DNA of 64,000 bases from Hyaloraphidium curvatum SAG 235-1 (taxonomy: Eukaryota; Fungi; Monoblepharomycota): positions 42,421 to 106,420 of the forward strand of contig JAIVFI010000047.1 of NCBI GenBank assembly GCA_025558095.1, read 5' to 3'. Both the position numbers and the translations under genes were made by a program. Every line of letters begins with the position of its first letter. Within the stretch, counting starts at the first letter, position 1. Below the pieces are notes generated by a model, which worked only from the letters and a program-made list of their open reading frames with translations, was not told the DNA's origin and made no database searches. Positions 3,410 through 64,000 of the stretch are shown here, one piece after another.

Positions 3410-3900
3410 GGCGCCGGTCGCTGAGTCGCGTTGTTGTGCGGCGGCCGACCAGCCCAGCGCGGGTGCTTCGGGGGAAATCCTGGTGGAAATGAAGAGTAAT
3501 GTTGGTGCCTTTGCAAATGGAACGACCAGCAGGCCGAGCCGGTGTGCCGCGCGGTGGGTGCGGCGCGGGGTGCCGTTGCAGCCCAACGAGTCCGCTCCCG
3601 GCGCCCGCGCGGCGGGGACAACTCACGTCCACCTGGGTGGTCGCTTTCCGTTATGAGCTAGCCCGGGCTGTTTTCCGGAAACCGCGCGAACCCGCCCGAG
3701 TCGGGGGACGGCGTCAGATTCGGAGGAGCGGTTTGGGGGGGGTCGAGCACGCGGCGCGTGCTTGTGACGCACACGCACAGCCGCTCGGATCTGGTTGCAA
3801 AACCCCCGGCAGAAAGCACCAAAACGGTATGAATTGTGAGGAATGTACAGTGGAATAGCTGGGATCTTCGGGTATCGTCGCGGCGCCACCCCAGCGGCGC

Positions 3901-4870
3901 TCAATCGTCCGAATCGGAGCCGCTCTCGGGGAAGCCGAGCACCGTCTTCCGCTTCGACGGCTGCGCGTTGTCCGCCGTGAGCTTGATGACCTCTGCGAGT
4001 GGAACAGACGCGGTCATGGGGCACGCGAAGAAGGATGTCGTTTGCGGCAAAAGAGGACGATCCCCAAGCAAGAGCATCAGTCACAAAACTGCTTCGAAGC
4101 GGGCAGACAAATGCTACCCACCGGATTTCGAGGCTAGGCGTTTCTCGAGCTGTGCCATAGTAAAGTTGTCGTTGTTGCCCAGCTCCTCGAAACCAACGAG
4201 TCTGGCCCGGGCGCCTTCAGAATCCACGTTTCCAGATAGCCGGCTTCGCCCCCCACCTGTCCACCGATATGCCGTCGACAAATGCCAGCACACACGGCAA
4301 AATTTGGATCTTGAGCCTCTCCACCAGGAACGGCGCGTTCTCCACGTCTATCCGGACGAACTTTGTCCGGAAGTGCTTCTTTGCCAGGGCCTGTCGACAG
4401 TCGCGTTCAGTCCGAGAAATCAATGCCAACACCCGCAATGAAACTGACTTCCAGATGCTTGTCCATGATCTGGCACCTCCGGAAGTCCTTGTGGAAGAAG
4501 CTGACCACGACGAGCTTCGTCGTCGTCGTGATCCGCATGAGCTCCTTCTCCTGCGTCACCGTCTCGTACGTGCCGTGGGCATTCTGCCGCATCTCCGAGA
4601 GCCGCTCCATCCTGGCCGGGCCGGGGCCGCGTCAGGACCGGGCCAGGTCCCGCTGTCCCGCGTTTCGGGGAGGTACCCACTCCCGCTTCAGCTCCTCCAT
4701 CCTCTGCTCCCGCAACCGCGCCATCCCGTGGTCCTCGTCCTCCTCGCGTTCCAGGGCGCGGAGGATCTCGTCCTCGTCGCGGAAGTCGTCGCTGCCGAAA
4801 GGGCAACCGCGTCGGAGGCCACCCCGGTCGCGGCGGCCGGGAATGCGGACTCATCGTGCGCCGACGGCAT
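3901..4870 (-). CDS. Phosducin-like thioredoxin-fold protein (PLP1/TXNDC9 family), multi-exon
   Basis: Exons read LREQRMEELKRE / VVVSFFHKDFRRCQIMDKHLE / LAKKHFRTKFVRIDVENAPFLVERLKIQILPCVLAFVDG / LVGFEELGNNDNF / acidic tail SDSDD*. Confidence 0.9.
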
Positions 4871-5274
4871 CCTGGCCGGCCGAGAAAATTGGACAAGTAA
4901 ACGACGATGGGCGAGGAGGGGAGGAAACGCCCGTAGAAAAAAGTCGAGCGAACGACGAGCTCGCGCGTGACGTCGCCGGCTCGCACCGAGAACCCGCCGC
5001 GTTTTTTTATCCATCGGGCGCTTTTGTTATCGATCTGGCTCTCTCCTACCCCAGTTTAGCTACTGATAGACATTGCGGCATGGCACATGTTTGCTCCTTG
5101 CCGTATTTCGCCGCCAGGGGCATGGGTCTACGAAGGGAGGCCCGGAAGTCAAGTCCATCATCTCGGGCATCCATACTGTCCCTATCCTTCACGAGTGGGT
5201 TGCTTGTCGACACCACTCATGTCCAATCCGCTGGATCCGTTCCAACGGAAGATTTGGGGGGCACATGCCGCACG

Positions 5275-6831
5275 ATGTCTGATCGACTCCCAAGGATCGT
5301 CGCCCGGCGGCTTGACTTCTCGGTCAAGCTCTCCGAAATGGCACCGCCGCCGTTCACGGCACGCGAGTGGGCGGCGCTCTTTCCCGCGCTGCCACCGGCG
5401 GCGGACGATGGGCTTGCGGCTAAGGCGGCCGACGGGTCCTCCGAGCCGAGCCGATTGGCGCAGGCCGAAGTGCTCGCTGCGCTGCCCAACGCCGCGCTGC
5501 GCGCATCTGTGCGGCTCTTCCCTGTTGCTTTGCGACTTTTCTCGCCATGGCGTGCGTTGGTCGTGTGGACGTCGCTGCCGACGACGGTCGTGGTGTCTCC
5601 GACCGCCGCACTGTTCGCGTTCGCGCGGGCCGACTTCGCCGGGCGGGCGTTCGGCGCCGCGCAGGTCGGCGTCGCTGTCGCCGCGCTCGCCGCGATGTCG
5701 CTCTCGTTCTTCGTGGCGCAGCGCATGGACGCGTTTGCTGCAGGCGCGGTCGCCGGCAACCCCGCCTCCGCCGACGACTACGCCGCGCACGCCATCGCAG
5801 GGCTGGTGCGCTGGCGGCAGCTGTGCGCCTCAGAGCCACAGAGTGCGCTCGTGCTGCACGTGGCGGGCGACGCGGACTGCCCGTGCCCCGGTTGCCTCCG
5901 GTCCGTGCTGCGCTCCGCCGCTGCCGCGTACTGGGTCGAGACCGCCGTCAAGGCTGCTGCTTCCATCGTATCTCTCTTCTTCGTCTTCTACTCGCCGTTC
6001 GTCACTTTTTCGCATGTATTTTGGCCGACGTGGTGGTGCGCCCTGCTCGGAATTGTCGGCTTCGTCGGAATGGGCTGGGGCCCTGTCACCTTCATCTTTG
6101 GCACGCACGGCCAGTCAGTGCCGGTGCTGGAAGTTGCAAAGAAACTGCACAAGCGTGCGATGGCGCTCGCACTGGATGTGGTGGCAGCGAACCTCGAGCT
6201 GCCCGAGGACGGAATGGCGGGACCGCGGCCGCCCGACGGCTCGGCTGCTGAACCCGAGCGCTCGATCGGTGCCGCGGCCCCCCGGCCACCTCACGGCTGC
6301 ACCGGTCCGCAGGGCACCCTCTACGCAGTGCTGCACGACCGCCTCGCGACCGCCTGGCGACGCCGCTCCGCCGCGGTCGCATACAGCGTCACCCGCCTCG
6401 TCGTCCACTTCCTCGGCCTCCTCTTCGCCGCCATCATCTCCGCCGCCGGCGCCTCCTGCATCCCCGCCTACGTCCCCCTTCTCGCGCTGTACCTCCTCCT
6501 GCAGCTCACCGCCGCCCTCGTCGTCCTCGCCGTCGCTAACTCCCAGATTGACGCCGTCGTGGACCTGTACGTCTCCACCCGCACTGCCCTCCGCCGGATC
6601 GCCGCCTCCTCCCTTGCCGTGCTCCCGAATCTGGAAGCGCACGACGCGCAGCTGGCGTTCTTTGCCTTGACGGCGGACAGGAGCCGCGCGAGGTTCGCGG
6701 GGGTCCCCGTTGGACTCGGGACCGCGAGAGCGGTTGTGGCGACTGTGGTGACCGTCGCGCTGGGGTTGTGGAGTCTGTTGAAGGGGGCGGGGTTGGCCGT
6801 CGTCGCGGACAACGTTTGTCCCGTGGTGTAG
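5275..6831 (+). CDS. Intronless 7-TM membrane protein, putative gustatory-receptor-like (7TMIC) family member
   Basis: Seven hydrophobic segments, a CPCPGC loop, SCIPAY, and C-terminal ARFAGVPVGLGTARAVVATVVTVALGLWSLL. Clearly paralogous to 40710..42333 and 62854..64000. Start may instead be 5338. Confidence 0.75.
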   Translation: MSDRLPRIVARRLDFSVKLSEMAPPPFTAREWAALFPALPPAADDGLAAKAADGSSEPSRLAQAEVLAALPNAALRASVRLFPVALRLFSPWRALVVWTSLPTTVVVSPTAALFAFARADFAGRAFGAAQVGVAVAALAAMSLSFFVAQRMDAFAAGAVAGNPASADDYAAHAIAGLVRWRQLCASEPQSALVLHVAGDADCPCPGCLRSVLRSAAAAYWVETAVKAAASIVSLFFVFYSPFVTFSHVFWPTWWCALLGIVGFVGMGWGPVTFIFGTHGQSVPVLEVAKKLHKRAMALALDVVAANLELPEDGMAGPRPPDGSAAEPERSIGAAAPRPPHGCTGPQGTLYAVLHDRLATAWRRRSAAVAYSVTRLVVHFLGLLFAAIISAAGASCIPAYVPLLALYLLLQLTAALVVLAVANSQIDAVVDLYVSTRTALRRIAASSLAVLPNLEAHDAQLAFFALTADRSRARFAGVPVGLGTARAVVATVVTVALGLWSLLKGAGLAVVADNVCPVV

Positions 6832-6899: not shown

Positions 6900-8969
6900 T
6901 CATTGTCGGATGTCGCAGCCTTCGGCATGGGCCTTGAGCACATAGGCCCGGTAGTCAAGAACATCATCCCGAGCTTCCATTTGCTCCACCAAATCCGCTT
7001 CCAGGTGCTTGTCAATGCCTCGCATGTTGAATCCGCCCGTGATCCACTGGTGCAGCACCATCCGTGGGGCATCCGTCCCAAAGTAAGAGTGACCTAGGAC
7101 GTCCTTGGCCGGATTTTTGACATCCACGTAGCGGATTCCTCGACAGACTGTGTGCTTTCCTCTGCCAAGGCGACGATGCCGAGTACCCCCAAGACCGTCA
7201 TTGATGAGGCTCCCTGAGACTATGAGGGCGAGGTCTGAGTAGGTTCCCATTACTAGGATGGGAGGTACTGTTGTCGACGATTGCAGCCTGGCATGCACGT
7301 CGGCCAAGTCCTTCACGAAAAGATCCTCAGAGACGTCTGGAGCCACGAATGCGACAGTGTTTGGGATGGTTTCGCCAGCAATCACCAGATCAAGGAGGAT
7401 TCTGCATCCCATGCTGTGGGCAAATGCATGCAGTTCCATGCCGTGAGAGTCAGTCCACCTCTTTAGCAGCTTCATGCATTCTTTTGCTCTTGGCAAAACA
7501 TGACGAGAGTTCTCTGAAGCCCGAGGATAGTTTGTCCACGGCATGAGCACACTGGTAAACTCGGATTCCCATGCAAATACGACTGGGATGTACTCGTCCA
7601 GGCAGCGGCACTCGACGAAGGAAGCCATCGTGTTCACAGCACCTTGGGCGGTGTTGTTGAACCCGTGGATGTAAACGACGACACCGCGGCAGCGTCTGAA
7701 CGCCTCAAGGGCCACCTTGGCATTCTCAAGGCAATCTAAAAAGCGGAGGTCACCAACGCGGGTAATGCGGAGATCCCGCTTGCGGTGGTTGTGGCCGGCC
7801 AAAACAACGTGGCCGTAGCGAAGGAAGTCGTCGCTTTCTGCTGCCGTCGGAAAGCTGTAGGCACCTTTGCCGGCAGGAGCATTTGGCAGTACGGGCCACC
7901 ACTTGGTTGTGACTAAGAAAAGGTCCCGGCGAGCTCGGTAGCGTTTGTAGTCGTTGAGATCCTTTCCAGCATAAGGATTAGGCTTCAGATTGGCGTCCAA
8001 TGCCACTGTCAGTATTGAAGTGTCAAGCCAGTTACTTGCGATAGACACTGCAGCGCCCAACTAACTTTCAGCTTTAGCATCCTGCTCCAGCAGAATCTTC
8101 GCGCTCTCGTTCCCGACAGAGAACACGTAGCCTTTCTTGTTGCAGGCGTAGCAGCCAACGACATTCAGGTCAGCTTCGAACTGGTCGTCCGCATCTAACG
8201 TCGCATGGATCTTTCCTCCACGGTGCCGCACGAGAGATGACTACTGGGAGCATCGGTCATCTGCCGACTGAGGAACGCACGATGCTGGGCCTACCACTCT
8301 CGACTTGTCTGCATCTATGCAGGCAAGTTCAATCTTTGCGCGGTCCCTGGCATCTGCAACATCGCGTTCTAGCCGTGTTTTCTGGAAGAAGCGGAGCAGT
8401 GATCTGTGAGCCGGACGGCGGCCTGCCAGAGAGAGCAAAGAGGGACGCACGATGTCATTGGCCCGGCGATCGATTTCTGCTTCCTTCGGTGACCGACCCA
8501 TCGGCGCAACGGCCCACAGGGGTAGCCAATCCTTTCGGTACGCAACCAGGAAGCCGTCTCCCCTGACCAGCACGTGGTTGATCCTCGCGCCAGCCAGGTC
8601 AACACCAACGAGCGCATCTTTTGGGCCAGCGGGGCCCTCGATCATGAGCTTGCCGTCTTGGATCACCGCTTTAGTCCCGTTTGCGACGTCGGGTGACCTC
8701 CATTCGATGCCGTCGCCGGAGCTGAAGACAAGCCTCGCGAACCGTTGATTGCCTATCGTCACCTCTTCGAGCTTGAGCTCCGCTCCCCCAGTCTCGGCGA
8801 GGAGCTTCAGTTGGCTGTCGGAGCGGTACGGCAAGAGCTCTCGTGTGGCGCGGAGCCGCATCTTGTCGTCTGACCCAGGGATCCCCACTTCGGCGATGAG
8901 GATGTCCTTGCGCTCCATGGTGGGCTGCGAGATCGCCCGGGGCAGAACGGGAGAGCTTTTGCTCGGCAT
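6900..8969 (-). CDS. Alpha/beta hydrolase (DUF900-like) with an uncharacterised N-terminal region
   Basis: VVYIHGFNN, nucleophile elbow FAHSMG, and LGHSY (catalytic His). ORFs 8241..9137 and 6900..8060 are in the same frame, and both intervening TAGs lie in predicted GT-AG introns (~8241-8294, ~8009-8065). Confidence 0.75.
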
Positions 8970-9019
8970 CGCTTTGCTGGGCGCTTCGGGAGAGGTTGCG
9001 GGAAGCGTCGCCTGAACCG

Positions 9020-9053
9020 CCGTGACTGACTGACTTCCGTGACTGACTGACTT
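9020..9053. repeat. Perfect 17-nt tandem direct repeat CCGTGACTGACTGACTT x2 in a divergent promoter
   Basis: Read directly at 9020-9036 and 9037-9053. Confidence 0.85.
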
Positions 9054-9405
9054 TCGGTGACGGACACGGTTACCAACGAAAGTATCCCCCGTCGAAAGTA
9101 GCAAAGTAGCAATCGCCTCACAATCACTGTCTCTCAACCTGTTTACAGACGCTTGAATAGTCCAAGAACCGACGTGACGCCGCGGTGCCAGGATGGGCCC
9201 TGGCAGTCATCAGGACCTCGCGCATCCGCCGGGGCACCAGGGGAGGCCGAGAAAGCAACAGAGCGGGTGATGAGGGATCGAAGGAACACCAAGGCCCAGA
9301 ACAAAAGCGGTGGTTTAGAATCAGACATCGACTGCGGCACTCACCCGCCCGCCCCGCGTCCTTTGTCCCCGCGCCGGGTCAGAAAAGCCGCCCAGTTATC
9401 CCGCC

Positions 9406-10571
9406 ATGACCTTCGACGGCCCTCCTGCGGACTCACTCTCCTCCCCTTTCGAGCTCTGGTGCGCCTCGCCCCTCCTGGTCGACCGCATTCCCGAGGACCT
9501 CGCGCTCTACCTCCACCCCGGCGGCCAGCCCGAGCGTTACGCGCTCATCGTGGTCAACACGCCGCTGTGCCGGAGGGACAGCTTTGAAAAAATCTGGAAC
9601 AGGGGTCGGTCTTCGCGTGTCGGTGTTCGCGGGGGGTGCTGACGGGTTCCGAAGCCGCGGTCAAGATATGCGCGGACGGGGGTGCAAACAGGCTGTTTGA
9701 CCAGTTCCGGGGCGACGATGCGGCGCGGGAAGAGTGGGCCAGCTTCTTGGCGCGGTTGCCGGGCCGCGATTGATATGCTCGTCGGCCAGATTCCTCCCGG
9801 GCTACATCGTCGGCGACCTCGACTCGGTCCGGCCCGAGGTCATGGACCACTACGCCGCGCGGGGTACCCGCGTGCTTCGCTTCGAGGACCAGGACTCGAC
9901 GGACCTGCAGAAGTGCATCACAGTGCTGCGGCAACTCGAGGTCGGGATCGACCCGGCGTCGCCCGTCGAGCACCGGAAACGGGCGTTGGCGGAACGGCCG
10001 AGGGCGAAAATGGACTTCGTGCCGCACGACCTGGTCGTCCTGGGTGCCCTGAATGGCCGGTTTGACCACTGCATCGCCAGCATCAACACGGTCTTTCTTT
10101 TGCGGGGTGGCCAGATCCACCTCGACGACGGGGTCGAGGGGGACGGCACGCCGGACCACCGCCGCGTCTGGCTCGTTAGCGACATGAGTGTCGCGACGGT
10201 CCTGGGCAAGGGGAGGCACAGGGTGGTGGTGATGCCGGCCGTGGAGGGACCGACGTGCGGACTGATGCCGCTGGGCGTGACCGAGGCCATGGTGGTGACG
10301 AAGGGCCTCAGATGGAACCTCGGTGCGTCGCCCTCTTTTCCCGATCGGCATCCGTGTTCCTTATCGCATGCTTCCGACGGCAGATCATTCGCTGCCCTTG
10401 CGCTTCGGCGGGATGGTGTCGACCTCGAACCAGTTTGCGCTGGAGGACCCGAAACTGGACCACGGCGGGGCGAACTTTGAGCGCGAGTGGCACGTCGTCG
10501 AAATCGAGACGGACGAGCCGATCGTGTGGACTGTCGAGGTGGACCTTGCGGGCAGCTACATCCCGCTATGA
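9406..10571 (+). CDS. THI80: Thiamine pyrophosphokinase
   Basis: ICADGGANRL, IVGDLDSV, DQDSTDLQKC, GALNGRFDH, GPTCGLMP, TKGLRWNL, FGGMVSTSN across exons. Confidence 0.93.
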
Positions 10572-17935: not shown

Positions 17936-20028
17936 CTAGTGCGTGAACAACCGCGTGCTGGTAAAGACGAGAACCATGCCGTTGTCGTTTGCGGCATCAA
18001 TGACGACCTGGTCGTTGACCGAGCCGCTCGGTGCCGCGACATAGTCCACGCCGGACATCTTTGCCCGTTGGATATTGTCCGAGAAGGGGAAGAAGGCGTC
18101 CGAGGAAACAACCACGCCCGAGAGTTTCTTCTTCCACTCCTTCTTCTCCTCGGCCGTCAGCAGATCGGGCACCGAGGCCGGGTTGAACAGCGCCTGCCAC
18201 GCGGCGAGATCCGTGATCTGGTCCGTGACGTAGAGATCGATGGCGTTGGCACGGTCCGGCCTCTTGACTTCCTTCTTGAAATCAAAGGCCAGGACCTTCG
18301 GGTGGTGCCGAAGCCACCAGTTATCGGCCTTGTCGCCGGCCAGACGGGTGCCTGAATGAACGAATGGTCAAAGCTTGAAAAAGAATGCAAGCCGCGACCG
18401 CTCACAGTGAATGCGGCTCTGCTGCCCGGCGCCCAATCCGATCGTTTGGCCGTTCTTGGCGTAGCAGACCGAGTTGCTCTGCGTGTACTTGAGAGCGATC
18501 GTAGCCACGATGAGATCACGTAGAGCGTCCTCTGGGATCTCTTTCTTGGCCGAAACAACGTTGGTGAAGAAGCTCTTCCCGATCTCGAGGTCGTTGCGAC
18601 CCTGCTCCAGGTACATTCCGTAGACCTGGCGGACCTCCCTCTTTTCCGGGACGTACGACGGGTCCATCTCCAAAACGGTGTACTTTCCGCCCTTCTTCTT
18701 CTTCAAAATCTCGAGCGCCGCCGGTTCGTATCCAGGAGCAATGATACCGTCCGAGACCTCGCGGGAGATGATCCTTGCGGTAACGACGTCGCACTTGTCG
18801 GAAAGCGCGATCCAGTCGCCGAAGGAGCTCATGCGGTCCGCACCCCTGGCGCGAGCGTAGGCGTTGGCGAGCGGGGTGAGCTCCGCGGCGAGATCCTCCA
18901 CAGCATAGACGTCCAGCTCCTCCTTCGAGAGCGGGACACCAACGGCGGCGCCGGCGGGAGAAACGTGCTTGAACGAGGCAGCAGCGGGCAGGCCGATCGC
19001 GGCCTTCAGCTCCTGCACCAACGGGTACGAGTTGAAGGCATCAAGGAGGTTGATGTAGCCTGGGGAGCCGGCGAGCACTGAAGAAAGGTGTGAATTGGGG
19101 GGACAAATGAAAGGAATCGACGAGCTCACCTTTGAAGGGCAGCTTTCCGTGCTTAACGTACACGCTGGCGGGCTTCTGATGCGGGTTGATGCCGTAGCGG
19201 AGCGGCTGGAACTGCTCTCCTGCCGCGTACTGGCCCCTGAAGTACCCGCTAATGGCCGTGTCGTAGTCTGAAGTCTGAGTGAACGCTTTCAGGGCAAGGG
19301 TCTTCCTCGTGGCCTCCGAGATGGTCTTGTTCGCCTTCAGCTCGGTGAGGAAGCTGGCGTAGTCCGCGGGGTCCGACAGAATTGTGACACGAGCGTGGTT
19401 CTTGGCAGCGGCACGGAGAAGCGTGACGCCGCCTACGGAAAGCTAAGTCGGGAGGAAGAAACAGCGCTTGACAAGGAACCAACCGATATCAATCTCCTCG
19501 ACCGCCTCCGGGATGGTGACACCCTCCTTTGCCACGGTCTTTTCGAACGGGTAAAGGTTGCAGACCACGTAATCGATCTTATTGTAGCCACGGGCCGCCA
19601 TGTCGGCGTTGTCAGAGGGAATGTCGCGAGCGAGAATTCCTGGTGACCGCAAAGAATTCCAATCAAACACATGGAATGTTTCCTTCAGTAATCCATCAAC
19701 GTACCGCCGTGGACAGCGGGGTGGAGGGTCTTGACACGGCCTCCCAGCATCTCCGGCGCCTGGGTGATGTCGGCGACATCGCTGACCTCCAATCCCGCGT
19801 CCCGGATGGCTTTCGCGGTCCCTCCAGAAGCAATGAGCCGCACACCGCACTCGGACAGGCCCTTGGCCAGGTCCAAGAGGCCGGTTTTGTCCGAAACGGA
19901 CAGGAGCGCTGCGGTCCCATTAGTTCCCACGCGAGTCCCGGAATCGCGGCGCGGAGACCAGTCAGACGCTGAAAAAATAGAATTCTTGCCGAGAGCGTCG
20001 TACCGTAGGATCCCTGCTGCGAAGCCAT
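17936..20028 (-). CDS. ADE17: Bifunctional AICAR transformylase/IMP cyclohydrolase (PurH/ATIC; ADE16/ADE17 family)
   Basis: [71 protein letters not shown]. Confidence 0.96.
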
Positions 20029-20161
20029 TTCGTGGGAGCGCGGGGATTGCCGTGTTTTTGTTTTGGTTCTGCGGCCGCGTCGTGCGTTCCAGCAGTGACT
20101 TGGCCGAGCCTCGAAGCATTCGCACCACCCCGCGGAGCCCTACTTCGGCGCGCGTTGCTCC

Positions 20162-23100
20162 ATGGCGGCCGGTGTTCCGCCCTCGCCGGCGATCGAAGCC
20201 GGCGCCGGCCAGCCCTCCGTGAGGGGCCTGGGCATCTCCTTTTCGCCGCCGGGTTCGGAACCGTCGCAAGACGAGATCGAAGACTCCGTCGGCCGCCAGC
20301 CCGCGGCACCAGCGCGCACCTCGAAAGCAAATGCTCCCTCGCAAGGGAGCGGCGCGGCCAAGAGGAGAGCGGCCCGTTCGCGCCTGACCTTCGACGACGC
20401 TGACGGGGACGATCGCTCGCCGCAGGTGCGCGTCCAGCGCGCTCTGCCGCCGGAGCACGAGGACTGGCGATTGACGCGTCTTATGCAGAGCAAAGGACTG
20501 GTCGCGCGGGCCAGGCAAGGGGCAGGCGGGGACGATCGTTCGCCGAGCCCCGGCCCGAGTCACGTAGCGATCAAACCGCTGGACCCGCTGGATTTCGAGG
20601 CATTCTCGGCGTTCGATCTCCGCATCCGGGAGGACGGGAACAATGCCTATGCCGTTGAAGGAGACGAGGATGCCGCGGAAGCGGACAGAGGACGCGGCGG
20701 ACCCGGGATCCGTGGCAGGAAGCGCACCGTTGCGAGCAAGAAGGCCCGCTTCGCCCCTCCAAGTCAAAACATGTACATCGACCCGTCGGCCTCGGTGGTG
20801 ACCTCTTCGGCCGCTCAAATCCGTGACGATGCGAGCCAGGCGTCGTCGGAGAACATCGCGGAGCAGGAGGACGTGCGGGAGGACGACGCGGTGAGATTCC
20901 TCGAAGCTGCAATTGCACGCCCGCTCAATGAGCGACTTTAGGTGGTACTGTGCCTTTTGCATCGCAAGAAAAGGCTGGGGGCAGCTGCTTTCTTTCCTGC
21001 GACACGTATTCTCTACCTCATGCAGGAATGCGAGGAGACGGACAAGTTCGCCGTTGCCCACCAAGGTCATAACCCCCAGGAGCCGCCCTTCTTGATGGTC
21101 TTTTTGATAAGTTCCTCCCATGCAGTGATCTTGCAGCTCCGACCTGCCCGCATCATCACCTCGTCCCGCTCGGACGAGTCTTTCCTGGACTTTCTCAAGA
21201 ACATCGAAGGCAACCGCGCCTTCATCGACGTCAGGCCCAGCACCGAGTTCTCCTTCCCCAACTCGCTCAACCGCCTCCTCACCGTCCGCATCCTCGGCAA
21301 CGGGTTCGACGTGCCCTCGTTCGAGGACCGAAAGGAGGCCGAGACGTGGCTGTCTGGCCGGATCGACCTCAGCACGCGAAACGGCGAAACAGTGACGGCC
21401 GCGGGCGCGCTGCTGGCGTACCTGCAGCGGTCTCTGGTGGCGGGCGACGCCCCGCAGCAGAAGACCAAGAAGAGGGGGAGAAAGCAGCTCGAGGAGGACG
21501 AGGACGACGAGGGGCCGTCGGTGCCCGAGGTGGAGCTCGAGGGGGTCGAGGAGATGGCGCTGGAGGCGCACCTGCAGATCAGCGAAGACACGCTGAGGTC
21601 AGCAATCCGGCCACAGAGCACACAACCTGCCGCTCATTCTCCGCGCCAACAGGGCCCTGTCGATCTTCATCGAGGACCGCCACCCAAGCATGCACAGCTC
21701 CCACCGCAAGGAGGGCCTCTCCCTCTTCGGCCTCCTCGACACCACTCTCACCCCGCTGGGCAAGCGGCTCCTCCGCTCGTGGTTCCTCAAGCCCAGCGCG
21801 GACCCGAAGGTGCTCCAGGGCCGGCACGACGCCGTGGCCATGTTCGTCAGGCCCGAGTACGAGCACACGGCGGACCAGATCCGGACGGCGCTCAAGCAGG
21901 TCGGAAACATCAGGGTAGGCTTCGTGCGTGGTCAGTTTCTGTCGGCAAAACTTACCGGGCTTCTCAGAGGGTCGTGCAGAACCTGCGGGTGCAGCCGACC
22001 AGCGCCGACTTCCAGAGCCTGCTCAAGTGAGTACAATCTTCCGCACGCCCCCTTTGGCACGCTGACTGTTCCGTCAGATTCGCCTACTACGCCATCCGCA
22101 TTCGGTCCCACCTCCGCGAGCTCCCACGAGGTACAACCATCGAGGCGATCGCCAAGGCAAGCCTGTCCGCCCATCCCGGCGGACAATGACCTGACTCCCG
22201 CCCCTGCCTCTAGTTCCAGGCGCTATGCGACGCCGCCAGCCTCCGCGAGATCGGCAGCCTCATCAACGAGATCTGCGACTTTGACGCGTCGGCCGAGGAG
22301 GGCAGGTTCGTGGTCAAGCCCGGGGTGGACGAGGAGCTGGACGAGATGAAGCGGACCTACGAGGGGCTGAACGATTTCCTGGTGCGTTCCCGCGCCAAGC
22401 GGTCTTCTGGGAGCGCTTGCTGATTTGTGCGGCGCAGACCTCGGTCGCGAGGGAAATGTCCGAGATCGTGGACCTGCCGCCGGGCAGCACCCTCAACTGT
22501 ACGCCTGCCCTCGTCCCCCATGCGCGCACTGCTTACCCGCATTCTGCAGGCATCTACTTCCCCCAGCTCGGCTTTCTCGTCACCGTCCCCCTACAGCCCA
22601 CATGGCGCACCGCCGCCGACTTCGAGATCCCGGGCCTGCAGTACCAGTTCTGCACCGCCAACACGGTCTACTACAAATCGGACCGCATGCGCGCCCTCGA
22701 CGCGGAGCTGGGCGACGTGCACGGCCTGATCGCCGACCGCGAGATCGAGCTGATGCACCAGCTGTCCGAGGCGGTGCTGGAGCACGGAGGGATGATGGTA
22801 CGCGCGTGCGAGGCGCTGGCAGAGCTGGATTGGTGGGTCGAACATGCCTCCGGGGCCGTGCATGGGACGGAACAGCTGACCCGATGCCGGGCGTTCAGCT
22901 TGCTCGCGTTCGCGGCCGCGGCGAGGAAGCACGGCTACGCGCGGCCAGCCATGACCGACGCCAACGTGCTCCTCGTCCGTGGGGCCCGCCACCCGCTGTC
23001 GGAGATCGTCGCCGAGACGTTCGTGCGCAACGACGTGAAGTTCAACGAGCCCGGGGGTGGGACGAGGGTGCTTATGCTGTCGGGGGCCAACTGCTCGGGG

Positions 23101-28257: not shown

Positions 28258-31200
28258 ATGCATCTCGCCAGCGCCGCCCGCCGCGCCGCCGGGCTCGTCT
28301 TGCGGGCGCGGCCGAGTGCCGCCCCGCTGCGTGCCGCGGCGGCGCCCCGCGCCGCGCCCTGCCGCCTCCGCCCGGCGCGCGCGCTCGCCACGGCGGCGCC
28401 CGGCCAGGACGCGTTCGCCAACGGCACGAGCGCCGCGGTCCTCGAGAGCATCTACGACTCGTGGCGGCAGAACCCGGCGTCGGTGCCCGCAGACTGGGGC
28501 GCGTACTTCAACGCGCTGGAGAGCCACCAGTTCGTGGCGGTGGCTCCCGGCGTGCAGGTCGCCGCCCCGGAGGCCGTGGTCACCCCGAAGCTGCTGCAGG
28601 AGCAGGTCAAGCGTGCGTGGACCCCCACCGCGCCCGCATCGCCGCTGAAACGCCCCCCCTCCCAAGTGATGGAGCTCATCCGCTCGTTCCGCGTCTTCGG
28701 CCACCTGTCGGCCAACCTCGACCCCCTGGGCCTGTGGAACCGCCCGCCCTACGCAGAGCTGGACTACAAGTTCTGGGGATTCACCGAGGCGGACCTGGGC
28801 CGCAAGTTCTTCGTCGGCGCGCCGCTGGCCCCCGGAGGTGGGTCCCCGCGGGGTGGCGCACCCCCGGCACGCCCTGACCCCGAACGGCAGACGGGTGGTT
28901 GACCCTCGGGGAGATCGTGGACAAGCTCAAGTACACGTACTGCAGCACCGTGGGCGTCGAGTACATGCACATGCAGGACGTGGCGCGGAAGGACTGGATC
29001 CAGAAGAAGGTGGGCTGTTCTGCCCCGCTCCGCCTTTTCATAAGTAACGCGCCCCCCAATTTAGCTCGAGGAGCGCGCGCGCACCTTCACCCCCGAGAAG
29101 AAGAAGATGATCCTCGCGTGGCTGACCTGGGGCGACAAGTTCGAGAGCTACCTGGCCAAGAAGTACCCCTTCACCAAGCGCTTCGGCCTCGAGGGCGCCG
29201 AGTCGCTGATCCCCTGCCTCGAGGCCATCCTCGAGCGCGGCACGGAGCTGGGCATCGAGACGGCGATCCTGGGGATGCCCCACCGCGGGCGGCTCAACGT
29301 GCTGGCCAACGTGATGAAGAAGCCCATGTACAAGATGTTCGCCGAGTTCGAGGACAAGAAGGGCACGCAGAACAACGAGGACGTCGAGGGCTCCGGGGAC
29401 GTCATGTACCACCTGGGCGCGTCGACGGACCGCGTCATGGCCTCCGGCAAGGAGATCCACCTCTCGCTCGTGTCGAACCCGTCGCACCTCGAGGCCGTGA
29501 ACCCCGTGGTGATCGGTAAGACGAGGGCCAAGCAGTTCTGGGACGACGACTACATGTTTGAGAAGAGCATGTCGATCCTGATGCACGGTGATGCTGGTGG
29601 GTCTCGTCCTCGCCGTCAGTGAACGCGGTTGCTGATGGGCATTTGTCTCGAACCCACAGCCTTTGCGGGCCAGGGCGTGGTGGCCGAGACCATCAACCTC
29701 AACGACCTGCCCGACTACACCGTCGGCGGCTGCATCCACATAGTCGTCAACAACCAGATCGGCTTCACCACCAACCCCAAGTTCTCGCGCTCCTCGCCCT
29801 ACCCCACCGACATCGCCAAGGGCTTCCAGGCCCCCATCTTCCACGTCAACGGTGACGACCCCGAGGCCGTGGTGTGGGCCGCCGAGGCCGCGATGGACTT
29901 CCGGCAGACCTTCCGGGACGAGGTCGTGATCGACATCTTCAGCTACCGCCGGCACGGCCACAACGAGATCGACGAGCCCATGTTCACGCAGCCCATCATG
30001 TACAAGAAGATCGCGCGGACGCCGTCGACGCTGGAGCAGTACCGCGAGACGCTGCTCAAGGAGGGCACCTTTGACCAGGGCACCATCGCCGAGGTCGAGG
30101 CCAAGTACATGGCCCTCTGCAACTCGCAGTACGACATGACCTCCCAGGCCGCGTACGAGCCCCCCTCGGACTGGCTCAAGGACTCGTGGTCGGCCATGCT
30201 AAAGCCGTCGCAGCTGGCCACGCGCCAGGAGACAGGCGTGCCGACCGAGGTGCTCAAGGAGGTCGGGATCATGGCCACGGACGTGCCGAGCAACTTCCGC
30301 CCGCACCGCAAGATCCAGCAGATCTACGACGCCCGCCGCAAGATGTACCAGACCGGCAAGGCGCTCGACTGGGGCGCCGCCGAGACGCTCACCTTCGGGT
30401 CGCTGCTCAACGAGGGCTACCACGTCCGGCTGTCGGGCCAGGACTGCGAGCGCGGCACCTTCTCGCACCGGCACGCGGTCATCTACGACCAGGAGACCGA
30501 GGCGCGGCACTGCGCCCTGGCCAACATCAGCCGCAAGCCCACGGGCATGTCCAACTTCACCGTCGTCAACTCGTCGCTGTCCGAGTACGGCGTCATGGGC
30601 TTCGAGTACGGGTACTCGCTCGAGAACCCCAACGCCCTGGTCATCTGGGAGGCGCAGTTCGGCGACTTCGGTGGGCTCCATCCTCGCGGTGCCGTCGTTG
30701 GCGCTGTGTCTGACTTTCGTCCAGTCAACGGCGCCCAGATCATGATCGACCAGTTCGTCTCCTCGGCCGAGCACAAGTGGTACCGCCAGTCCGGCCTCGT
30801 CCTCCTCCTCCCCCACGGCTTCGAGGGCCAGGGCCCCGAGCACTCGTCGGCCCGCCTGGAGCGCTTCCTCCAGGCCGTCAACGAGGAGCCCACCGAGTTC
30901 CCCGAATACGACAGCCTGGACCCCGCGGCCATCTCGGCGACGCTGATGAAGCAGACGCAGAACATCAACATGGTCGTGGCCAACCCGACGACGCCGGCCA
31001 ACCTGTACCACCTGCTCCGGCGGCAGGTCCACCGCATGTTCCGCAAGCCGCTGGTCATGATGAGCCCCAAGTCTCTGCTAAAGGCCCCCTACTGCGTGTC
31101 GGACCTGGAGGAGTTCGGCCCGGGCAAGCGCGTCATGAACGTGATCCCCGACCAGCTCCCGGACCTCGTGGACGGGGACAAGGTCCGCCAGGTCATCTTC

Positions 31201-31705
31201 TGCACGGGCAAGGTGTACTACGACCTCACCAAGGCCAGGGACAAGAACTCCTTCAAGGTCTGGCTCATCTGCCCGCCGTCAGAGGCTGCTCGTGCTGACC
31301 TTTCCCGCTCAGGACGTCGCCATCGTCCGCATCGAGCAGCTCTCCCCCTTCCCCTTCCTCCACGTCCTCATCGAGATGAACAAGTACCCCAACGCCGAGC
31401 TCGTCTGGTGCCAGGAGGAGCCGCGCAACCAGGGCGCGTGGTCCTTTGTCCGGCCGAGGCTGCTGCTGACCAAGACCGAGTCGGCGGGCAAGCCCGCCAT
31501 CGAGATCGTGGGTCCCTCCTAGCGAGCCGGTGCCGGACCCCGCTCATCGCGCTCCGCCCCATTCTAGCGCTATGCTGGCCGCGCGCCCTCCGCTGCGCCG
31601 GCCACGGGCTCCAAGAAGAAGCACTACGCCGAGCTGGAGGCCTTTGTCCGGGACGCGTTCGGCAAGAGTGAGGACCCCAAGTGGAAGGGGCTGGACTACA
31701 TTTAG
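28258..31705 (+). CDS. KGD1: Mitochondrial 2-oxoglutarate dehydrogenase E1
   Basis: Arg/Ala-rich presequence; [64 protein letters not shown]. Confidence 0.95.
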
Positions 31706-36172: not shown

Positions 36173-37828
36173 ATGGAGCGCGTGACCCGCTCTTCGGAGA
36201 GCCGCGGGGGCGTCGGCACACGGCGCGCCGCGGCGGGCGCGGGTGCGCTGAACTCGCCCGTGGACTTCTCTCTCGAGTCTGTCGCTGCCGCCCCGCTCGC
36301 CCAGCTGCCGCCGCGGCTCATCGCCCCGGGGCCGATGGCGGGAAAGAATGTGCCGCAGTTTCTCTCCAAGCTCTTCAAGTGGGCCGGGTTGCGAACCCCC
36401 GCGCGGCTCCTCTGACACCGGGCCGAATCTCCGCAGCATGGTCAACGACCCCAACTCGGACAACCTGATCCACTGGAGCGAAGAGGGAAACTCGTTCATC
36501 GGTAGGAAGCGCGGCTATCGTGGCCCCGCCCCCCTCTGACCCCGGCCGCAGTCGAGAACCCGGACGAGTTTGCCCACGAGATCCTCCCCCGCTTCTTCAA
36601 GCACTCGAACTTCTCCTCCTTTGTCCGCCAGCTCAACATGTACGGCTTCCACAAAGTTCCGCACCTGCAGGCCGGCGCCCTGCTCCCTCCCCAGGAGGCC
36701 GAGCTGGCGACAGAGTTTGCCCACCCGCACTTCCTCCGGGACCAGCCCGAGCTGCTCTCGCTCGTCACGCGCAAAAAGGGGAAGGAGGAGGACAATCCGC
36801 AGGCCTTGTCGCCCGGCTCGTCGCTCGAACTGTCGACGCTGATCCAGGAGATGGCCGGCATCAAACGGCACCAGTTTGCGATCCAGAACGACCTCCAGAC
36901 GATGCAGAAGGCGAACCAGGAGATGTGGGCGGAAACGGAGAGCCTGCGGGCGCAGTACCAGAAGCAGCAGGAGCTCATCGAGAAGATCATCCAGTTCCTG
37001 GCCTCTGTGTTCCAGTCGAAGACTGGCCTGGGACAGGGGAAGCGGCGGAAGCTGGTCACGGGCGTGGCGCTGACGGACGACGACGACGACGAGGATGACG
37101 AGAACGCAGCCAACGGGATCGAGGAGATTCTGCAGCTGAGGCCGGAACCTGAGCAGCACGTGCATTGTGGGTGCTCTTGGAAGGGGCGTCTTCCTCACGA
37201 CTCTAAACTGCTTCAACTTGCAGCCGCGCGGCAAGGTCCCATCATTCTGCCCTTCAACGCCCCTTCACCCGCTGGCTCGAGCTCGTCCACCTCGAGCGCC
37301 GGCGCTTCCGCTCCCGCCGCCCGCAAGATCTCCGAGGCCAAACCCCCGTCTGCCGCCAAGGGCAAGAAGAAGGGCGCTGCATCTCCCGAACCGACGGAAA
37401 CCATCAACGGCGGACCCAGCACTCCCCCCGGGCCGGCTTCCGACGCGGTGATACCGCAGTCGACCGCCGCCCTCTTCAACCTCCCTCTGGCCTCGCTCGT
37501 CGCACCCCCTCCGACGGAAGCCATCGGCAACCTCTCCAAAATGGCGTCCAACATCGATCTGACCAAGGGGAGCGCGGATGCGCTGTCCAAGGACATTGAG
37601 AACCTGGAGCACTCGCTGGCCAACGTCCAATCGGCGCTCGGGGTCGACTTGGACGGCGGGAACATGGACCTTGACCAGTACCTGCAGCAGCACGACTTCG
37701 GCGGGACCGAAGAAGACCAGGCTGTGCTCCTGAAACTGTTGCAGGATCACCCGGACCTCTTTCTTACCCACGGCGTGGCACCGAAAACGGAGGACGAGGA
37801 GGATCCGATGAGCTTTTTGGACGTCTGA
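36173..37828 (+). CDS. HSF1: Heat shock transcription factor
   Basis: HSF DNA-binding domain VPQFLSKL..IHWSEEGNSF..LPRFFKHSNFSSFVRQLNMYGFHKV..EFAHPHF, then HR-A/B coiled coil ending QQELIEKIIQFL. Confidence 0.93.
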
Positions 37829-39831: not shown

Positions 39832-40709
39832 GGCTTGGCGCGCGGCGGCTGCGGCAACTTTCGATTCCGAGTGTGAAATGTGGGGTCGAGGGACTCGGTG
39901 TCCCCTGGCCTCGGCCTCTGCGGCGGCGGCACCGAATTGCCGCCCGCATCCCCACAAGGATGGAGGGGACTACAAAAGTGCCCGTGGCCGAGGAATCCCA
40001 CCTCCAGAAGAAGTCGCAAGCTCCCGGCTAGCAGATACGCACCCAAGATGAGCGCTCCGATGCATATGCTCTCACCGGCGAGCGTGGCTGGCACTTTGAG
40101 GGCCGTTCTGCTCGGGCGGCCCTGGCCCCAATGGCGCCGGCACGAGATCCGAATCAGCCTCACGCTGCTCGGCCCTTCAGTGTTTGACGATCTCAAGGAT
40201 TTCGTTTCGCGCCATATTGGCGAGGAAGAGCATTTGCTGGGAAGGGAATCATCGACTGCGAGGTGCGAAAGAGATCCAGAAACCTCGCGCGCCTAAGGAA
40301 TAGAAGATCACGATGGAGGACTCAGGTTCTATAGGTATCGCCTGCTTCTGATGTGGGTTTATGGTCCAGTTTAGGCCCTCAAACGGAAGCTCGAAGATGC
40401 GCACGAAGGATGTTGACTCGTTAGACCGCACCGGAGCATCGAAAGCTGAAGAGCCTGCGGCCATGATACTGTCCAGCGTGTTGTAGATAAATCACCTCCT
40501 TCGTCGGAATGATTTCGGCAAGAGGAATGTTCCTTCTCGCTGTAGTCCTGAGGCACGTCCTGCGGTCGGCGGCGAATCGACGCGCCGACCAAACTTCCAC
40601 AGCGCGAGACGTCCGAGGTTTACCCTCTTGTTGATCGTCGGTCGGAAGAGAATATCAGGCTCGTGCCATGAGTGGAGAAAGCAAGCCCGCCGCCGCCGCC
40701 GCCGCCGCA

Positions 40710-42333
40710 ATGGGCGTCCCCGCACTCCAAGACCCAACCTCTGCTGCCTCTCACGGCGACCCGAGCGCGCCGCACGGCGACCCAAGCGCGCCGGACGCCG
40801 ATTTCTCGCCCGAAGAATGGGTGTGCCTGTTCCCCGCCGCGACGCCGCCGTTCCGGCCGCTGCTGCAAGACGAGGAAGCAGGGGAAGCGGGGGGCGACCC
40901 CGCGGCCGAGTTCCGAGGAGCGCACCCCGTGACGTTCGAAACCATGCTGGCCGACTTCGACGACCCCGTGCTCCGAATGTTCGCTTTTCTCTCCGCGTCT
41001 CCGACCGCGAGCTTCCTGGGCTGGAGGACCACAGGACTTACTGGACTCTCCGAGTGCTTCATGCTGGCATTCCAGGGGCTGGCATGGGCGTGGAACGACG
41101 GCCGTTTCGGAACCAAACAGATGGCGGTGGGAATGGCTTCCCTGGCTATCATTGCCTCTATCGGCTTCGGAACTTTCGTTCTCTACGCCCTCGCCGTTCC
41201 CAGGGTGCCCAAGGTGCTCGATTTTTCCGCCCCGGCGGTGCTCTGCAGATGGCTGCAGCTGACGAGGAAGGAGGGAGGGGGGAAACCTGGAGCACCGGTC
41301 AATGCTGGAGCCCGCAATCTCGTCGCGCACGAAGAGGGTGACCGTTTCTGTCCGTGCTCTGTCTGTGTCGGCAACATCCAGCAGCTTGCAGCTTGTATGA
41401 CCTTCTTGGACATCGTTCTCAACTTCCTCGTTGGATTTTTCTGGGTATGGACTCCAGGTTGGACTGCACTTGTTACATATGGAGCCCAGCTGTGGTCCAC
41501 ATGGTGGGTTGCGTTCTCGGAGCAATCTACGGTTAGTGGCCTTGGCGTCGAGTGCTTCTGTTCACTCATCGCCATCTGCTTTGCAGCTTGCGCTTCGCTG
41601 GCGTACTTCAGGAACTGTGCTTGTCGCTTCGTTGGCATAGCCAACATTGCTTACGCTAGGCTTGAAGCAAGGCTGCACCATCGTGCTGTCTATGAGATCC
41701 ATGCTGGAAACTGTGCTCAACGGACGCCCGAACAGGCAGGGACCGTGGTTGTACGTTCGCCTGCACCACAGCTTTGCTGCGTGGTGCAAGACGCGGGAGA
41801 TCCAAGACCAAGCCATCGTCAGTAAATCGATGTTGGTCATCTTTTTGCCTTCGGTCGTCATTGCGATCGTTGTCAATGTCGTGAGTGGTTGGGACAGGGA
41901 ATCGAGCATCCGGGGTGCTGACGCTGCCGCCATCAAACAGGCGGCCGGATCCTGCGTCACTGCCTGGCTCCTCTTCGTCACCGGCTTGGTCGTCGTCTAC
42001 ATGCTCATCAACGCCATCAACCTCGCCTAGCGCAACAACCTCATCTCCGTCGTCGCATCGGCATACCACGATGCCCGGCGGGACCTCCGCACGGCGTGCC
42101 TCAAGCTCGGACCGACCCCTCTCGCCGCCGCGCTGGAGCAGCACGACCGCGTCATTGGCTCGTTCCTCGAGGTGTCGCGGTACAGCGCCAAGATTCTGGG
42201 GTTCACCGTCACCTACGGAGGCGTGCGGACCATGGTGGTCACGATGGTGACCCTCTCTGTGGCTCTGTGGAGCGTGTTCAGGTCTCTGGGGGTGTTCTTC
42301 ACGATGGAGAGCTTCTGTCCTTTGGTTGACTAG
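40710..42333 (+). pseudogene. Disrupted 7-TM (7TMIC/GRL-like) family paralog
   Basis: FSPEEWVCLFP, CPCSVC, AKILGFTVTYGGVRTMVVTMVTLSVALWSVF. Lesions relative to the 63 kb copy: 1-nt G loss near 41507, 8-nt deletion near 41690, TCG>TAG at 42028-42030. Introns at 41532-41586 and 41881-41940. Confidence 0.8.
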
Positions 42334-49500: not shown

Positions 49501-50307
49501 TGTGACGCGCGCTTGGCGATGGGATAGTCTTTGGGTACGGGGAGCGCGTCCGACGTCCGTCCGAGCCGGCGCGCGGGAGACAGCGCGGCGTCGCGCAATC
49601 CCGGTGCCAGAACGAGACGGAAATGGTCAGGTCCGAGGCAGTCGTTCGAAATCGTTGGGCGTCCTCACGAGCTGCCGTGTAGTGCCGAACTCGCGGGATT
49701 GTCGGGACGGTTGATTTCGGCAGCCGATCGAACTTGCCACCGCACCCCGCGGACCAGAGGACCACAGTTGAGGACGCAGCATTCCTCATCACAAAGCAAG
49801 ACGAATCCTATACTACGACCGCGACGTGTTTGTCTTCCAGATTCAGCTGCCTCGCCTATCTTCGGATCACCATCTCTCGCACAGATTGAAAGCGTTTTCA
49901 CGGCGCAGATGTTCGACGCACCCTCAAAAGCAGCATCAGAGAATGTGGATCGGAGGCGACTATCATTGAAGCAGAAGAAGCCACCCGTCGTCCGATAGCT
50001 GGCTGTGCTAACTGACTTGGCCACCGAGGGCCTGGGATCCTTGGGAGTTCCCGCTGCCGCCATCACGCCATTCGATTAATGCAGGGTAAGCGGATGCAAA
50101 GTCCCGTCGCGTCAGATTCATCCGACGTTCCGATGGACATGTGAGTGCGGGACCCTTTGCGGGTGGGGTCGGAGGCGGGGGTTCCTGCCCAGCCTTGAGG
50201 ACCCTTAAGCGGGTCGGCCGACTTTCTTGACCGCCGCCCGCCTTCCTCGTCCAGCATCTGCGTCCACTTACCCTCGACTTCCCCTCCTCATCGACAAGGA
50301 CGCGCAG

Positions 50308-62780: not shown

Positions 62781-63194
62781 TGAGCCGGAGGCGGAATAGA
62801 CGGCGCGGCGATCGCGATTCTTGCCACCTTTGGCTTCATTACACGGCCACCTCCTAGTCAACCAACGGGCAGAAGCTCTCCATCGTGAAGAACACCCCCA
62901 GGGATCGAAACACGCTCCACAGAGCCACAGAGAGGGTGACCATCGTGACCACCATGGTCCGCACGCCTCCGTAGGTGACGGTGAATCCCAGAATCTTGGC
63001 GCTGTACCGCGACACCTCGAGGAACGAGCCAATGACGCGGTCGTGCTGCTCCAGCGCGGCGGCGAGAGGGGTCGGTCCGAGCTTGAGGCACGCCGTGCGG
63101 AGGTCCCGCCGGGCATCGTGGTATGCCGATGCGACGACGGAGATGAGGTTGTTGCGCGAGGCGAGGTTGATGGCGTTGATGAGCATGTAGACGA
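62781..63194 (-). repeat. Near-identical inverted repeat arm 2 (partner at 41993-42395)
   Basis: Reverse complement matches 41993-42395. Confidence 0.9.
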
Positions 63195-64000
63195 GGACAA
63201 TGGAAAGGCAAAAGAGGAGCCATGCGGGAATGCAGGACCCGACGCCCTGACGGATGGCGGAAGCGCTAGATCAGTCCCAGATTGTCTTCCCCGAATCGTG
63301 TGTCACTCACGACATTGACAATGATTGTGATTACAATCAGAGGAAACATGATGACAAACACGGAGTTGCTGAGCAGTGTCTGGTCCTGCATCTCGCGCAC
63401 TTTGCACCAAGCTGCGAAGCCGTGGTGAAGCCGAACGTACAGCCAAGGCTCTGACCCGGTCGGCCGGTCCCCGAGTGCAGTTTGCAGCATGGATCTCATG
63501 GAGAGGACGACAGCACGATGGTGCAGCCGCGCTTCGAGCCTCGCGGACGCGACGTTGGTCACCCCGACAAAGCGAGCTGCAGAGTTCATGAAGGATGCCA
63601 CGGCGACACAAACTGCAGGTTGGAGATATGTGAGTCAGCAGAGTCATTCCTGCGACGGGCGTGCGATGGCCTGACTGTAGATGGCCCCGAGAACACAACC
63701 CCACCACGTGGACAAGAGTTTGGAGCCAAAAGTGATCCACGTGGTCCATCCGGCAGTGAAGGTGAAAAGGAATGAGAACAAGAAGTTGTAAACGATATCC
63801 AAGAAGGTCATGCAAGCTGCAAGCCGCTGAATATTGCCAACGCAGCCGGAACACGGACAGAACCGGTCGCCCCTCTTCGTGCGCGACGAGGAAGAGGCTT
63901 CCATCGAATGACCCCACGACCAGGTTTTGGCCCTTCTTCCTTCCTCGTCAGCTGCAGCCATCTGCAGAGCACCGCCGGGGCGGCGAAATCCAGCACCTTT
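62854..64000 (-). pseudogene. Disrupted 7-TM (7TMIC/GRL-like) family paralog; 5' end outside the window
   Basis: VLDFAAPAVLCRWLQLTRKE, CPCSGC, GSCIPAW, and the same C-terminus as the 41 kb copy. Two +1 insertions (near 63915 and in the G-run at 63870-63873). Confidence 0.75.

Follow-up and report, generated by a model that had tools for sequence, protein, structure and literature searches.

A large gene family encoding seven-helix membrane proteins with a predicted insect odorant and gustatory receptor-like fold in the fungus Hyaloraphidium curvatum

Insects smell and taste by means of seven-transmembrane ion channels (7TMICs). We describe a gene of the fungus Hyaloraphidium curvatum whose product is predicted to adopt the fold of these channels, and the large family to which the gene belongs. 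The gene lies at 5275-6831 on the plus strand of a 64,000-nucleotide stretch of DNA, referred to here as the window, which spans C47:42421-106420 of the 31.9-Mb, 55-contig H. curvatum assembly; base 64000 of the window is the end of the contig. A preliminary description of the window, made from its letters alone, had proposed that this gene and two disrupted paralogs encode fungal relatives of the receptors by which insects detect odors (odorant receptors, ORs) and tastes (gustatory receptors, GRs). We discuss the structure and transcription of the gene, the predicted topology and fold of its product, and the extent of the family. The family is probably a divergent, previously undescribed, and expanded branch of the 7TMIC superfamily; its function as a set of chemosensory channels is proposed by analogy and weighed against other readings below.

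The gene and its copies in the window

The target gene is a single uninterrupted frame, as the preliminary description had it: the frame is open throughout, with 518 codons and a stop. A longer stop-to-stop frame around it begins at 4363, a by-product of the high G+C content of the window (64%). The 822-codon open reading frame (ORF) 4363-6831 was considered as a gene and rejected, as a highly expressed minus-strand gene with five introns overlaps its 5' part. The deposited protein model, P0001 (583 aa), begins at the first in-frame ATG, 65 codons upstream of 5275, such that residues 66-583 of P0001 are the target protein. Paralogs mostly start 4-26 residues ahead of a shared FxxxEW motif, and the RNA contig over the target begins at or before 5017. 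Candidate start codons are listed in Table 1.

The target gene is transcribed and intronless. The expression data are the assembled contigs of one public run, labelled only 'RNA?'. In neighboring minus-strand genes, these contigs omit eight short segments, every one with CT..AC ends, which correspond to GT..AG introns on the minus strand; the run is therefore a spliced transcriptome. Over the target, contigs cover 5017-5629 and 5884 onward, with depth in all 30 bins and no internal joint. One contig continues from the target into the convergent neighbor gene, whose stop is 69 nucleotides (nt) away; either the 3' ends of the 2 transcripts overlap, or the assembler merged them.

Two further copies of the gene had been proposed, both of them as disrupted. 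A family hidden Markov model (HMM) detects exactly 3 copies in the window and no fourth, and the 2 additional copies are recovered by tblastn (E 1e-8 to 2e-10) as well as by the HMM (40782-42324, E 4e-56 and 2e-38; 62863-63243, E 5e-50). The first of these, paralog 2, is a true pseudogene. It has 2 introns with canonical signals (GTGAGT...CTGAC...CAG) and, relative to paralog 3, deletions of 1 nt and 8 nt; in addition, it carries an in-frame TAG where paralog 3 has TCG. The disruption claimed for 40710-42333 is thus real. The one claimed for 62854-64000 is not: both frame breaks of paralog 3 are canonical introns, of 63 nt (GTCAGG...CTGAC...CAG) and 64 nt (GTGAGT...CAG), and without them the frame runs open from the edge of the window as far as the stop. 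The joined exons of both paralogs were translated locally; of the 2 products, only that of paralog 3 was scored against the family HMM, which it matches in one piece over positions 189-495 with a score of 288. Paralog 3 is incomplete because the contig ends at base 64000.

Paralogs 2 and 3 are separated by 20 kb and inverted relative to each other. Their last ~340 nt, from the end of TM6 (the sixth transmembrane helix) to the stop, are 94-100% identical (41987-42333 against 62854-63200), versus mostly 59-83% upstream; this mosaic of identity suggests that the conserved 3' end has undergone gene conversion. The TAG of paralog 2 sits within the near-identical tract.

Predicted topology, conserved motifs, and fold

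Hydropathy and the secondary structure of an AlphaFold2 (AF2) model concur on 7 transmembrane (TM) helices, with a long loop between TM4 and TM5 and a 6-residue loop between TM5 and TM6. Two short helices (H46-52 and H63-69) precede TM1. Among 60 paralogs, the segments assigned to the outer face are short, with median lengths of 9, 11, 6, and 14 residues for extracellular loops EL1, EL2, and EL3 and the C-terminal tail; the segments assigned to the cytosol are long, with medians of 82, 74, 76, and 66 residues for the N-terminus and intracellular loops IL1, IL2, and IL3. Mean counts of lysine plus arginine are 0.9, 0.5, 0.1, and 0.5 in the former (sum 2.0) and 7.8, 8.4, 9.7, and 7.9 in the latter (sum 33.8). 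By the positive-inside rule, the N-terminus is therefore predicted to be cytosolic and the C-terminus to be outside, in agreement with superposition of the model on ORs.

Conservation differs between regions of the protein. Column entropy ranges from 1.35 to 1.99 across EL3, TM7b, the hairpin that precedes TM7b, and the C-terminal tail (EL3 1.35, TM7b 1.56, hairpin 1.98), and the cores of TM1-TM6 are the most variable part (2.7-3.0). TM7b is accordingly the most conserved helix; the preliminary description gave TM7 as the most conserved part of insect GR and OR channels and their relatives. The invariant residues of the 60-sequence alignment are H195, C202, C204, C207, C395, N422, G476, T493, and C515. 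All motifs previously listed from the 3 window copies are present in the target: besides the N-terminal motif (Table 1), these are CPCPGC at 202-207, LHKRA at 291-295, YAVLHDRLATAW at 350-361, SCIPAY at 394-399, and the C-terminal F...RARFAGVPVGLGTARAVVATVVTVALGLWS. Their family-wide forms differ in detail. In IL2, (K/R)LxxRA retains R294 in 98% and A295 in 95% of sequences, and YxxLHxxxxxxW has conserved Y350, L353, H354, and W361; the consensus of TM7b is RTxxVTxxTVxVGLWSxLRG.

One family-specific motif combines a histidine with 3 cysteines in IL1. A CPCxxC sequence following TM2 had been described as possibly metal-binding. It is found in the target, ~50 residues past TM2 and just before TM3, but its spacing is not that of the family: H-x6-C-x-C-x4-C occurs in 42 of 60 paralogs, and the x2 variant of the target in 13. 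The idea of a metal site gains from the invariant H195, which joins the 3 cysteines, and from the position of the motif on the cytosolic side, as indicated by charge counts and by alignment to ORs. In the AF2 model, the loop has no regular secondary structure and is predicted with high confidence (predicted local distance difference test [pLDDT] 96-97). The simplest reading is that the His/Cys3 motif is a candidate Zn-binding knuckle. On the outer face, C395 in EL3 and C515, which in most paralogs is 2-4 residues away from the C-terminus, form a second invariant set. The AF2 model has a beta-bridge between EL3 (395-397) and the C-terminal tail (508-510), and a C395-C515 disulfide is likely.

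The AF2 model of the target was built from the 60-sequence alignment with no templates and has a pLDDT of 83 and a predicted TM-score (pTM) of 0.85. In the model, a glycine-containing hairpin joins the 2 halves of a split TM7, and TM4-TM6 extend into the cytosol; a second model has the same cytosolic extensions and split-TM7 layout. A Foldseek search of the PDB places BmGr9, AgamOR28, and Gr64a on top, with E values of 0.13-0.5 that are not significant alone. When the target model is compared with the whole PDB representative set (48,161 chains), all 8 7TMIC representatives occupy ranks 1-8; with the second model, they fall within ranks 1-9. These superpositions begin at model residues 55-76, cover ~85-95% of the length of the 7TMIC chains, keep the order of the helices, and have a root-mean-square deviation (rmsd) of 5-6 A; helical bundles can reach high Z scores by chance, a caution that applies to the ranking. 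No GPCR (G-protein-coupled receptor) or transporter appears among the top rows of the PDB representative set search. Insect OR and GR channels are in this manner the best and only full-length PDB matches, as the preliminary description proposed; it had named outward N-termini, a helix count other than 7, and best matches to GPCRs, transporters, or other folds with no 7TMIC match as grounds for abandoning the assignment, and none of these is observed.

A fold search of the ESM Atlas returns 4 eukaryotic clusters at TM-scores of 0.52-0.55; all else scores 0.21 or less. One of the 4 is 98% PF12056 (DUF3537), a plant family, and is automatically named 'Gustatory receptor'; the others are unnamed cnidarian, arthropod, and chlorophyte clusters. 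Language-model features recover the same unnamed animal clusters (0.95-0.96) and DUF3537 (0.93), but the recognition value of these features is low, and the support is therefore weak. A complex prediction with 4 copies of residues 270-518, in which the alignment went unused, gave a poorly folded chain and hence no answer on assembly.

A genome-wide family and other genes of the window

The family is large. A search of the genome with the single protein yields 108 matches from the best 83 of 657 first-look candidates. A profile search scored the best 86 of 887 first-look candidates; all 86 match, the weakest at E ~1e-80, and by inspection ~35 of these loci are absent from the single-protein search. 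Both searches combined, together with the 2 extra window copies, give at least ~120 distinct loci, and the family possibly comprises about 250 genes in H. curvatum. When 1.84 billion representative proteins were scanned exhaustively with phmmer, 274 matched at E <=1e-3 and 177 at E <=1e-10. Up to about 270 annotated proteins and fragments belong to the family. The preliminary description thus extrapolated correctly from 3 copies to a lineage expansion, and correctly to a fungal host: H. curvatum is a chytrid-grade fungus, described as atypical and non-flagellated and placed in Monoblepharidomycota (PMC8371127).

At least one related organism carries members of the family too. Among 30 sampled phmmer matches, 27 are from H. 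curvatum, 1 is from an IMG metagenome, and 2 are from the Logan assembly of run SRR26194948. This assembly has a G+C content of 53-54% and carries MIOX and amine-oxidase genes in the order of G000:C9; it is collinear at only 73-76% DNA identity and therefore represents a different but related organism. It contains at least 3 family members (L031 1160-2870; L032 2076-5653), 2 of them in tandem, and one of these members is the 'full-length' match P0028 of the family alignment. Two of its copies change frame at about HMM position 256-257, near the place where window paralogs 2 and 3 have intron 1 (~258); the frame change may be an intron common to these genes.

Members of the family are divergent and mostly intact. 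Pairwise protein identity is ~25-35% for most paralogs, and the best paralog of the target is 45% identical. A transposon-borne multicopy gene was considered and ruled out on account of these low identities. In-frame stops occur in ~6 of the 86 scored loci; given so few stops, and given that paralog 3 is intact, the rapid turnover that had been read from 2 'disrupted' copies is weakly supported. A maximum-likelihood tree was built from the C-terminal 250 residues of 28 H. curvatum copies and 3 copies from the SRR26194948 organism, leaving out 2 rows with aberrant C-termini (L004 and L007). It has long terminal branches (median 0.71 changes per site), a few recent pairs, and deep forks that lack resolution; the tree is therefore silent on whether the expansion came before or after the split of the 2 organisms.

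The remainder of the window holds genes of other kinds (Table 1). The minus-strand gene at 3842-4966 is highly expressed, with a contig depth of ~1600 against 60-130 for its neighbors, and has 5 short introns with CT..AC ends. On the other side of the target, at 6900-9500 (-), an alpha/beta-hydrolase ORF (DUF900, 6900-8060; Pfam E 4e-16) makes up just the final exon of the target's convergent neighbor, a longer gene in which RNA contigs reveal further introns at 8006-8065, 8241-8294, and 8382-8450. An ORF of 1,899 codons at 53666-59365 lies where the G+C content is 78-79% and many long ORFs overlap one another on the two strands. Arg makes up 21% of its translation, Gly 16%, Ala 15%, and Pro 10%; the translation has no Pfam match and is probably not a real protein in that frame.

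Table 1. Positions of the target gene, its predicted protein features, its paralogs, and other ORFs in the window (H, helix of the AF2 model with its residues)
Feature	Position	Strand	Remarks
Target coding sequence	5275..6831	+	518 codons and stop; 7-TM protein, predicted insect OR/GR-like (7TMIC) fold
Possible N-terminal extension	5080..5274	+	65 codons; used by P0001; candidate ATGs 5080, 5275, 5338
Cytosolic N-terminal motif	5353..5385	+	FTAREWAALFP, residues 27-37; P37 invariant
TM1	5551..5619	+	Residues ~93-115; least confident helix (pLDDT 56-79)
TM2	5647..5718	+	Residues ~125-148
His/Cys motif in IL1	5857..5895	+	H195-x6-C202-P-C204-x2-C207; IL1 of ~70-74 residues; invariant in 60 and 61 sequences
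TM3	5926..5994	+	Residues ~218-240
TM4	6028..6099	+	Residues ~252-275 (H253-276), then cytosolic helical extension H282-307
IL2	6100..6384	+	Residues 276-370; disordered middle 308-348; (K/R)LxxRA and YxxLHxxxxxxW motifs
TM5	6385..6450	+	Residues ~371-392; membrane part of 45-residue helix H349-393 reaching the cytosol
EL3	6451..6468	+	Six residues (ASCIPA); invariant C395
TM6	6469..6537	+	Residues ~399-421; part of 47-residue helix H399-445 reaching the cytosol; invariant N422 at inner end
TM7a	6622..6681	+	Cytosolic helix H450-469; first half of split TM7
TM7a-TM7b hairpin	6682..6720	+	Residues 470-482; contains Gly; invariant G476; bridges at 472-477
TM7b	6721..6786	+	Residues 483-504 (H481-504); R485, T490, invariant T493, L498, W499, L502, K/R503
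Outer C-terminal tail	6787..6828	+	Short; invariant C515
Paralog 2, pseudogene	40668..42333	+	Introns 41532-41586, 41881-41940; deletions near 41507 (1 nt) and 41690 (8 nt); TAG at 42028-42030
Paralog 3, 3' two-thirds of an apparently intact gene	62854..64000	-	Introns 63613-63675 (63 nt), 63247-63310 (64 nt)
MGS-like domain ORF	19688-21571	-	Pfam
2-oxoglutarate dehydrogenase E1 ORF	29629-31668	+	Pfam: E1_dh, Transket_pyr, OxoGdeHyase_C
HSF-type DNA-binding domain ORF	36638-37825	+	Pfam
Bestrophin-like ORF	50227-51468	+	Pfam; borderline match (26.7 bits; cut-off 27)

Proposed function and relation to known channels

A mechanism can be sketched from the solved structures of ORs and GRs. Subunits would assemble into tetramers via a cytosolic anchor domain, the bundle of TM4-6 and TM7a, around a central cation pore lined by TM7b. 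Each paralog would bind ligands in a pocket of its own, built from the variable outer halves of TM1-TM6, allowing the repertoire to act as ligand-gated chemosensory channels. In the cytosol, the IL1 motif would bind Zn2+ in a structural or regulatory role; at the outer face, a C395-C515 disulfide would staple the C-terminal tail beside the outer end of TM7b. Chemotaxis is a less likely output than ion or calcium signaling that adjusts metabolism or development, because H. curvatum reportedly lacks a flagellum. Roughly half of the probability that we place on a 7TMIC branch goes to such a ligand-gated chemosensory repertoire. In its boldest form, the proposal is that Hyaloraphidium and its relatives independently built 100 to 250 ligand-gated 7TMIC channels, by which a non-motile planktonic fungus reads its chemical surroundings, and that gating is coupled to a cytosolic Zn-binding His/Cys3 module; we offer this as a tentative idea, markedly less probable than the fold assignment.

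Several observations weigh against this interpretation, and they point in different directions. Some concern function. The family may be truly, if remotely, homologous to 7TMICs and yet serve another purpose: it could comprise constitutive channels or metal- or redox-regulated channels of internal membranes, scaffolds, or recognition proteins, and its expansion could reflect interaction with algae or bacteria or self/non-self discrimination. The functions of the non-animal 7TMICs (DUF3537, PHTF, protist GR-like proteins [GRLs]) are not known (PMC7746228, 10.1101/2023.08.30.555482), and a fungus reported as non-flagellated (PMC8371127) has no obvious behavioral output. Furthermore, an enlarged IL1 with an invariant His/Cys3 motif suggests cytosolic regulation, and a long IL1 is typical of the PHTF-like Class-B branch. 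We nevertheless consider a non-chemosensory role unlikely, since variable TM1-TM6 helices combined with a conserved TM7b are the pattern of ligand-diversified OR and GR repertoires, and since so many diverged paralogs are hard to square with a housekeeping channel.

Other observations concern the fold itself. At the level of sequence, no link to GRs, ORs, or DUF3537 is detected. Pfam-A hmmscan of the target and 60 paralogs gives nothing credible, with no 7tm_6 or 7tm_7 match at E values up to 1 and no match to DUF3537 (PF12056); the family profile, run against all PDB chain sequences, finds only a chance match to VMA21 (E 0.35). A protein homolog search with the protein and with the profile gave back just the window's own protein, but its word index was saturated at 8000 candidates, which makes it uninformative. 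A six-frame search of the genome with PF12056 and PF08395 is empty, but its controls are equally silent, so the search is powerless. Together with the rmsd of 5-6 A, the Foldseek E values above 0.1, and the high Z scores that helical bundles attain by chance, the lack of sequence or profile similarity leaves room for convergence, in which an unrelated seven-helix family has long helices that happen to superpose on 7TMICs. We find this improbable, clearly more so than a change of function: the known 7TMICs rank at or near the top with both models and align along ~85-95% of their chains with the helices in the same order, independent Atlas matches to DUF3537 and to animal clusters agree with the fold, and cytosolic N-termini, minimal outer loops, TM4-6 extensions, a split TM7, and a TM7b that is the most conserved helix all co-occur. 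That the proteins are instead GPCR-like, PAQR-like, or transporter-type is a reading whose sole support is the number of helices; the PDB rankings of both models and the charge counts effectively refute it. A divergent 7TMIC branch remains the best explanation.

If the predicted fold holds, this is the largest 7TMIC repertoire that we have found reported outside animals and plants. Because the family is very large and mostly intact, a diversifying use is favored over a housekeeping role; because it is invisible to sequence search, structure-based screens that lack this proteome would miss it. If the chemosensory interpretation is true as well, the family would represent the first large system of 7TMIC chemoreceptors outside the animals, comparable in size to insect OR and GR repertoires, and an accessible model for ancestral 7TMICs. 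No ligand or current is known for any non-animal 7TMIC (Benton et al. 2020, PMC7746228). The family provides many natural variants for asking whether such proteins are ligand-gated channels; most members are intronless and ~500 residues long, and are therefore easy to clone and express.

Full-text literature searches retrieved nothing that connects Hyaloraphidium to gustatory receptors, and a fungal expansion is not mentioned in the titles or abstracts of the 7TMIC papers retrieved. Among fungi, a structure-based screen reports 7TMICs from Chytridiomycota and Blastocladiomycota only (10.1101/2023.08.30.555482). The same preprint, by Himmel et al., gives 6 structural hallmarks of the superfamily. 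Five of these are found in the H. curvatum family: 7 helices packed as in ORs, an N-in/C-out topology, outer loops that are short, TM4-6 helices that extend into the cytosol, and a TM7 split in two. The sixth is a re-entrant loop (TM0) in the N-terminal region, where the model has the 2 short helices ahead of TM1. The conservation pattern of 7TMICs, high in the pore (TM7b) and anchor and low in the N-terminal helices (10.1101/2023.08.30.555482), is present too. In topology, the family is the opposite of GPCRs.

What is new in the family is the cytosolic His/Cys motif, the outer cysteine pair, and the family size, and these features set it apart from each known group. Insect ORs and GRs (Orco, MhOR5, AgamOR28, BmGr9, Gr43a, and Gr64a; 7tm_6 and 7tm_7) share no detectable sequence similarity with it, and the TM7 motif of insect and animal GRs, TYhhhhhQF, is not recognizable; only the invariant T493 could correspond. 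Relative to insect ORs and GRs, the family also has an enlarged IL1 (~74 residues) with the invariant His/Cys3 motif, an invariant cysteine pair in EL3 and the C-terminal tail, an N-terminal cytosolic region of ~90 residues, a fungal host, and mostly intronless genes. A long IL1 is likewise a trait of PHTF-like Class-B 7TMICs (10.1101/2023.08.30.555482), but that of H. curvatum is just ~74 residues and carries a His/Cys motif of its own. The plant DUF3537 proteins, which are likewise non-animal 7TMICs, give a top Atlas fold match (TM-score 0.52 by query and 0.61 by target, with 357 residues aligned). The fungal GRLs reported to date are single chytrid genes, among them SpunGRL1 and SpalGRL1, that were found through their sequence similarity to GRs and that keep one of the 4 TM7 motif positions (Benton et al. 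2020, PMC7746228). By this description, the H. curvatum family stands apart from them: it is undetectable by similarity to GRs, and it is present in at least ~120 copies rather than one.

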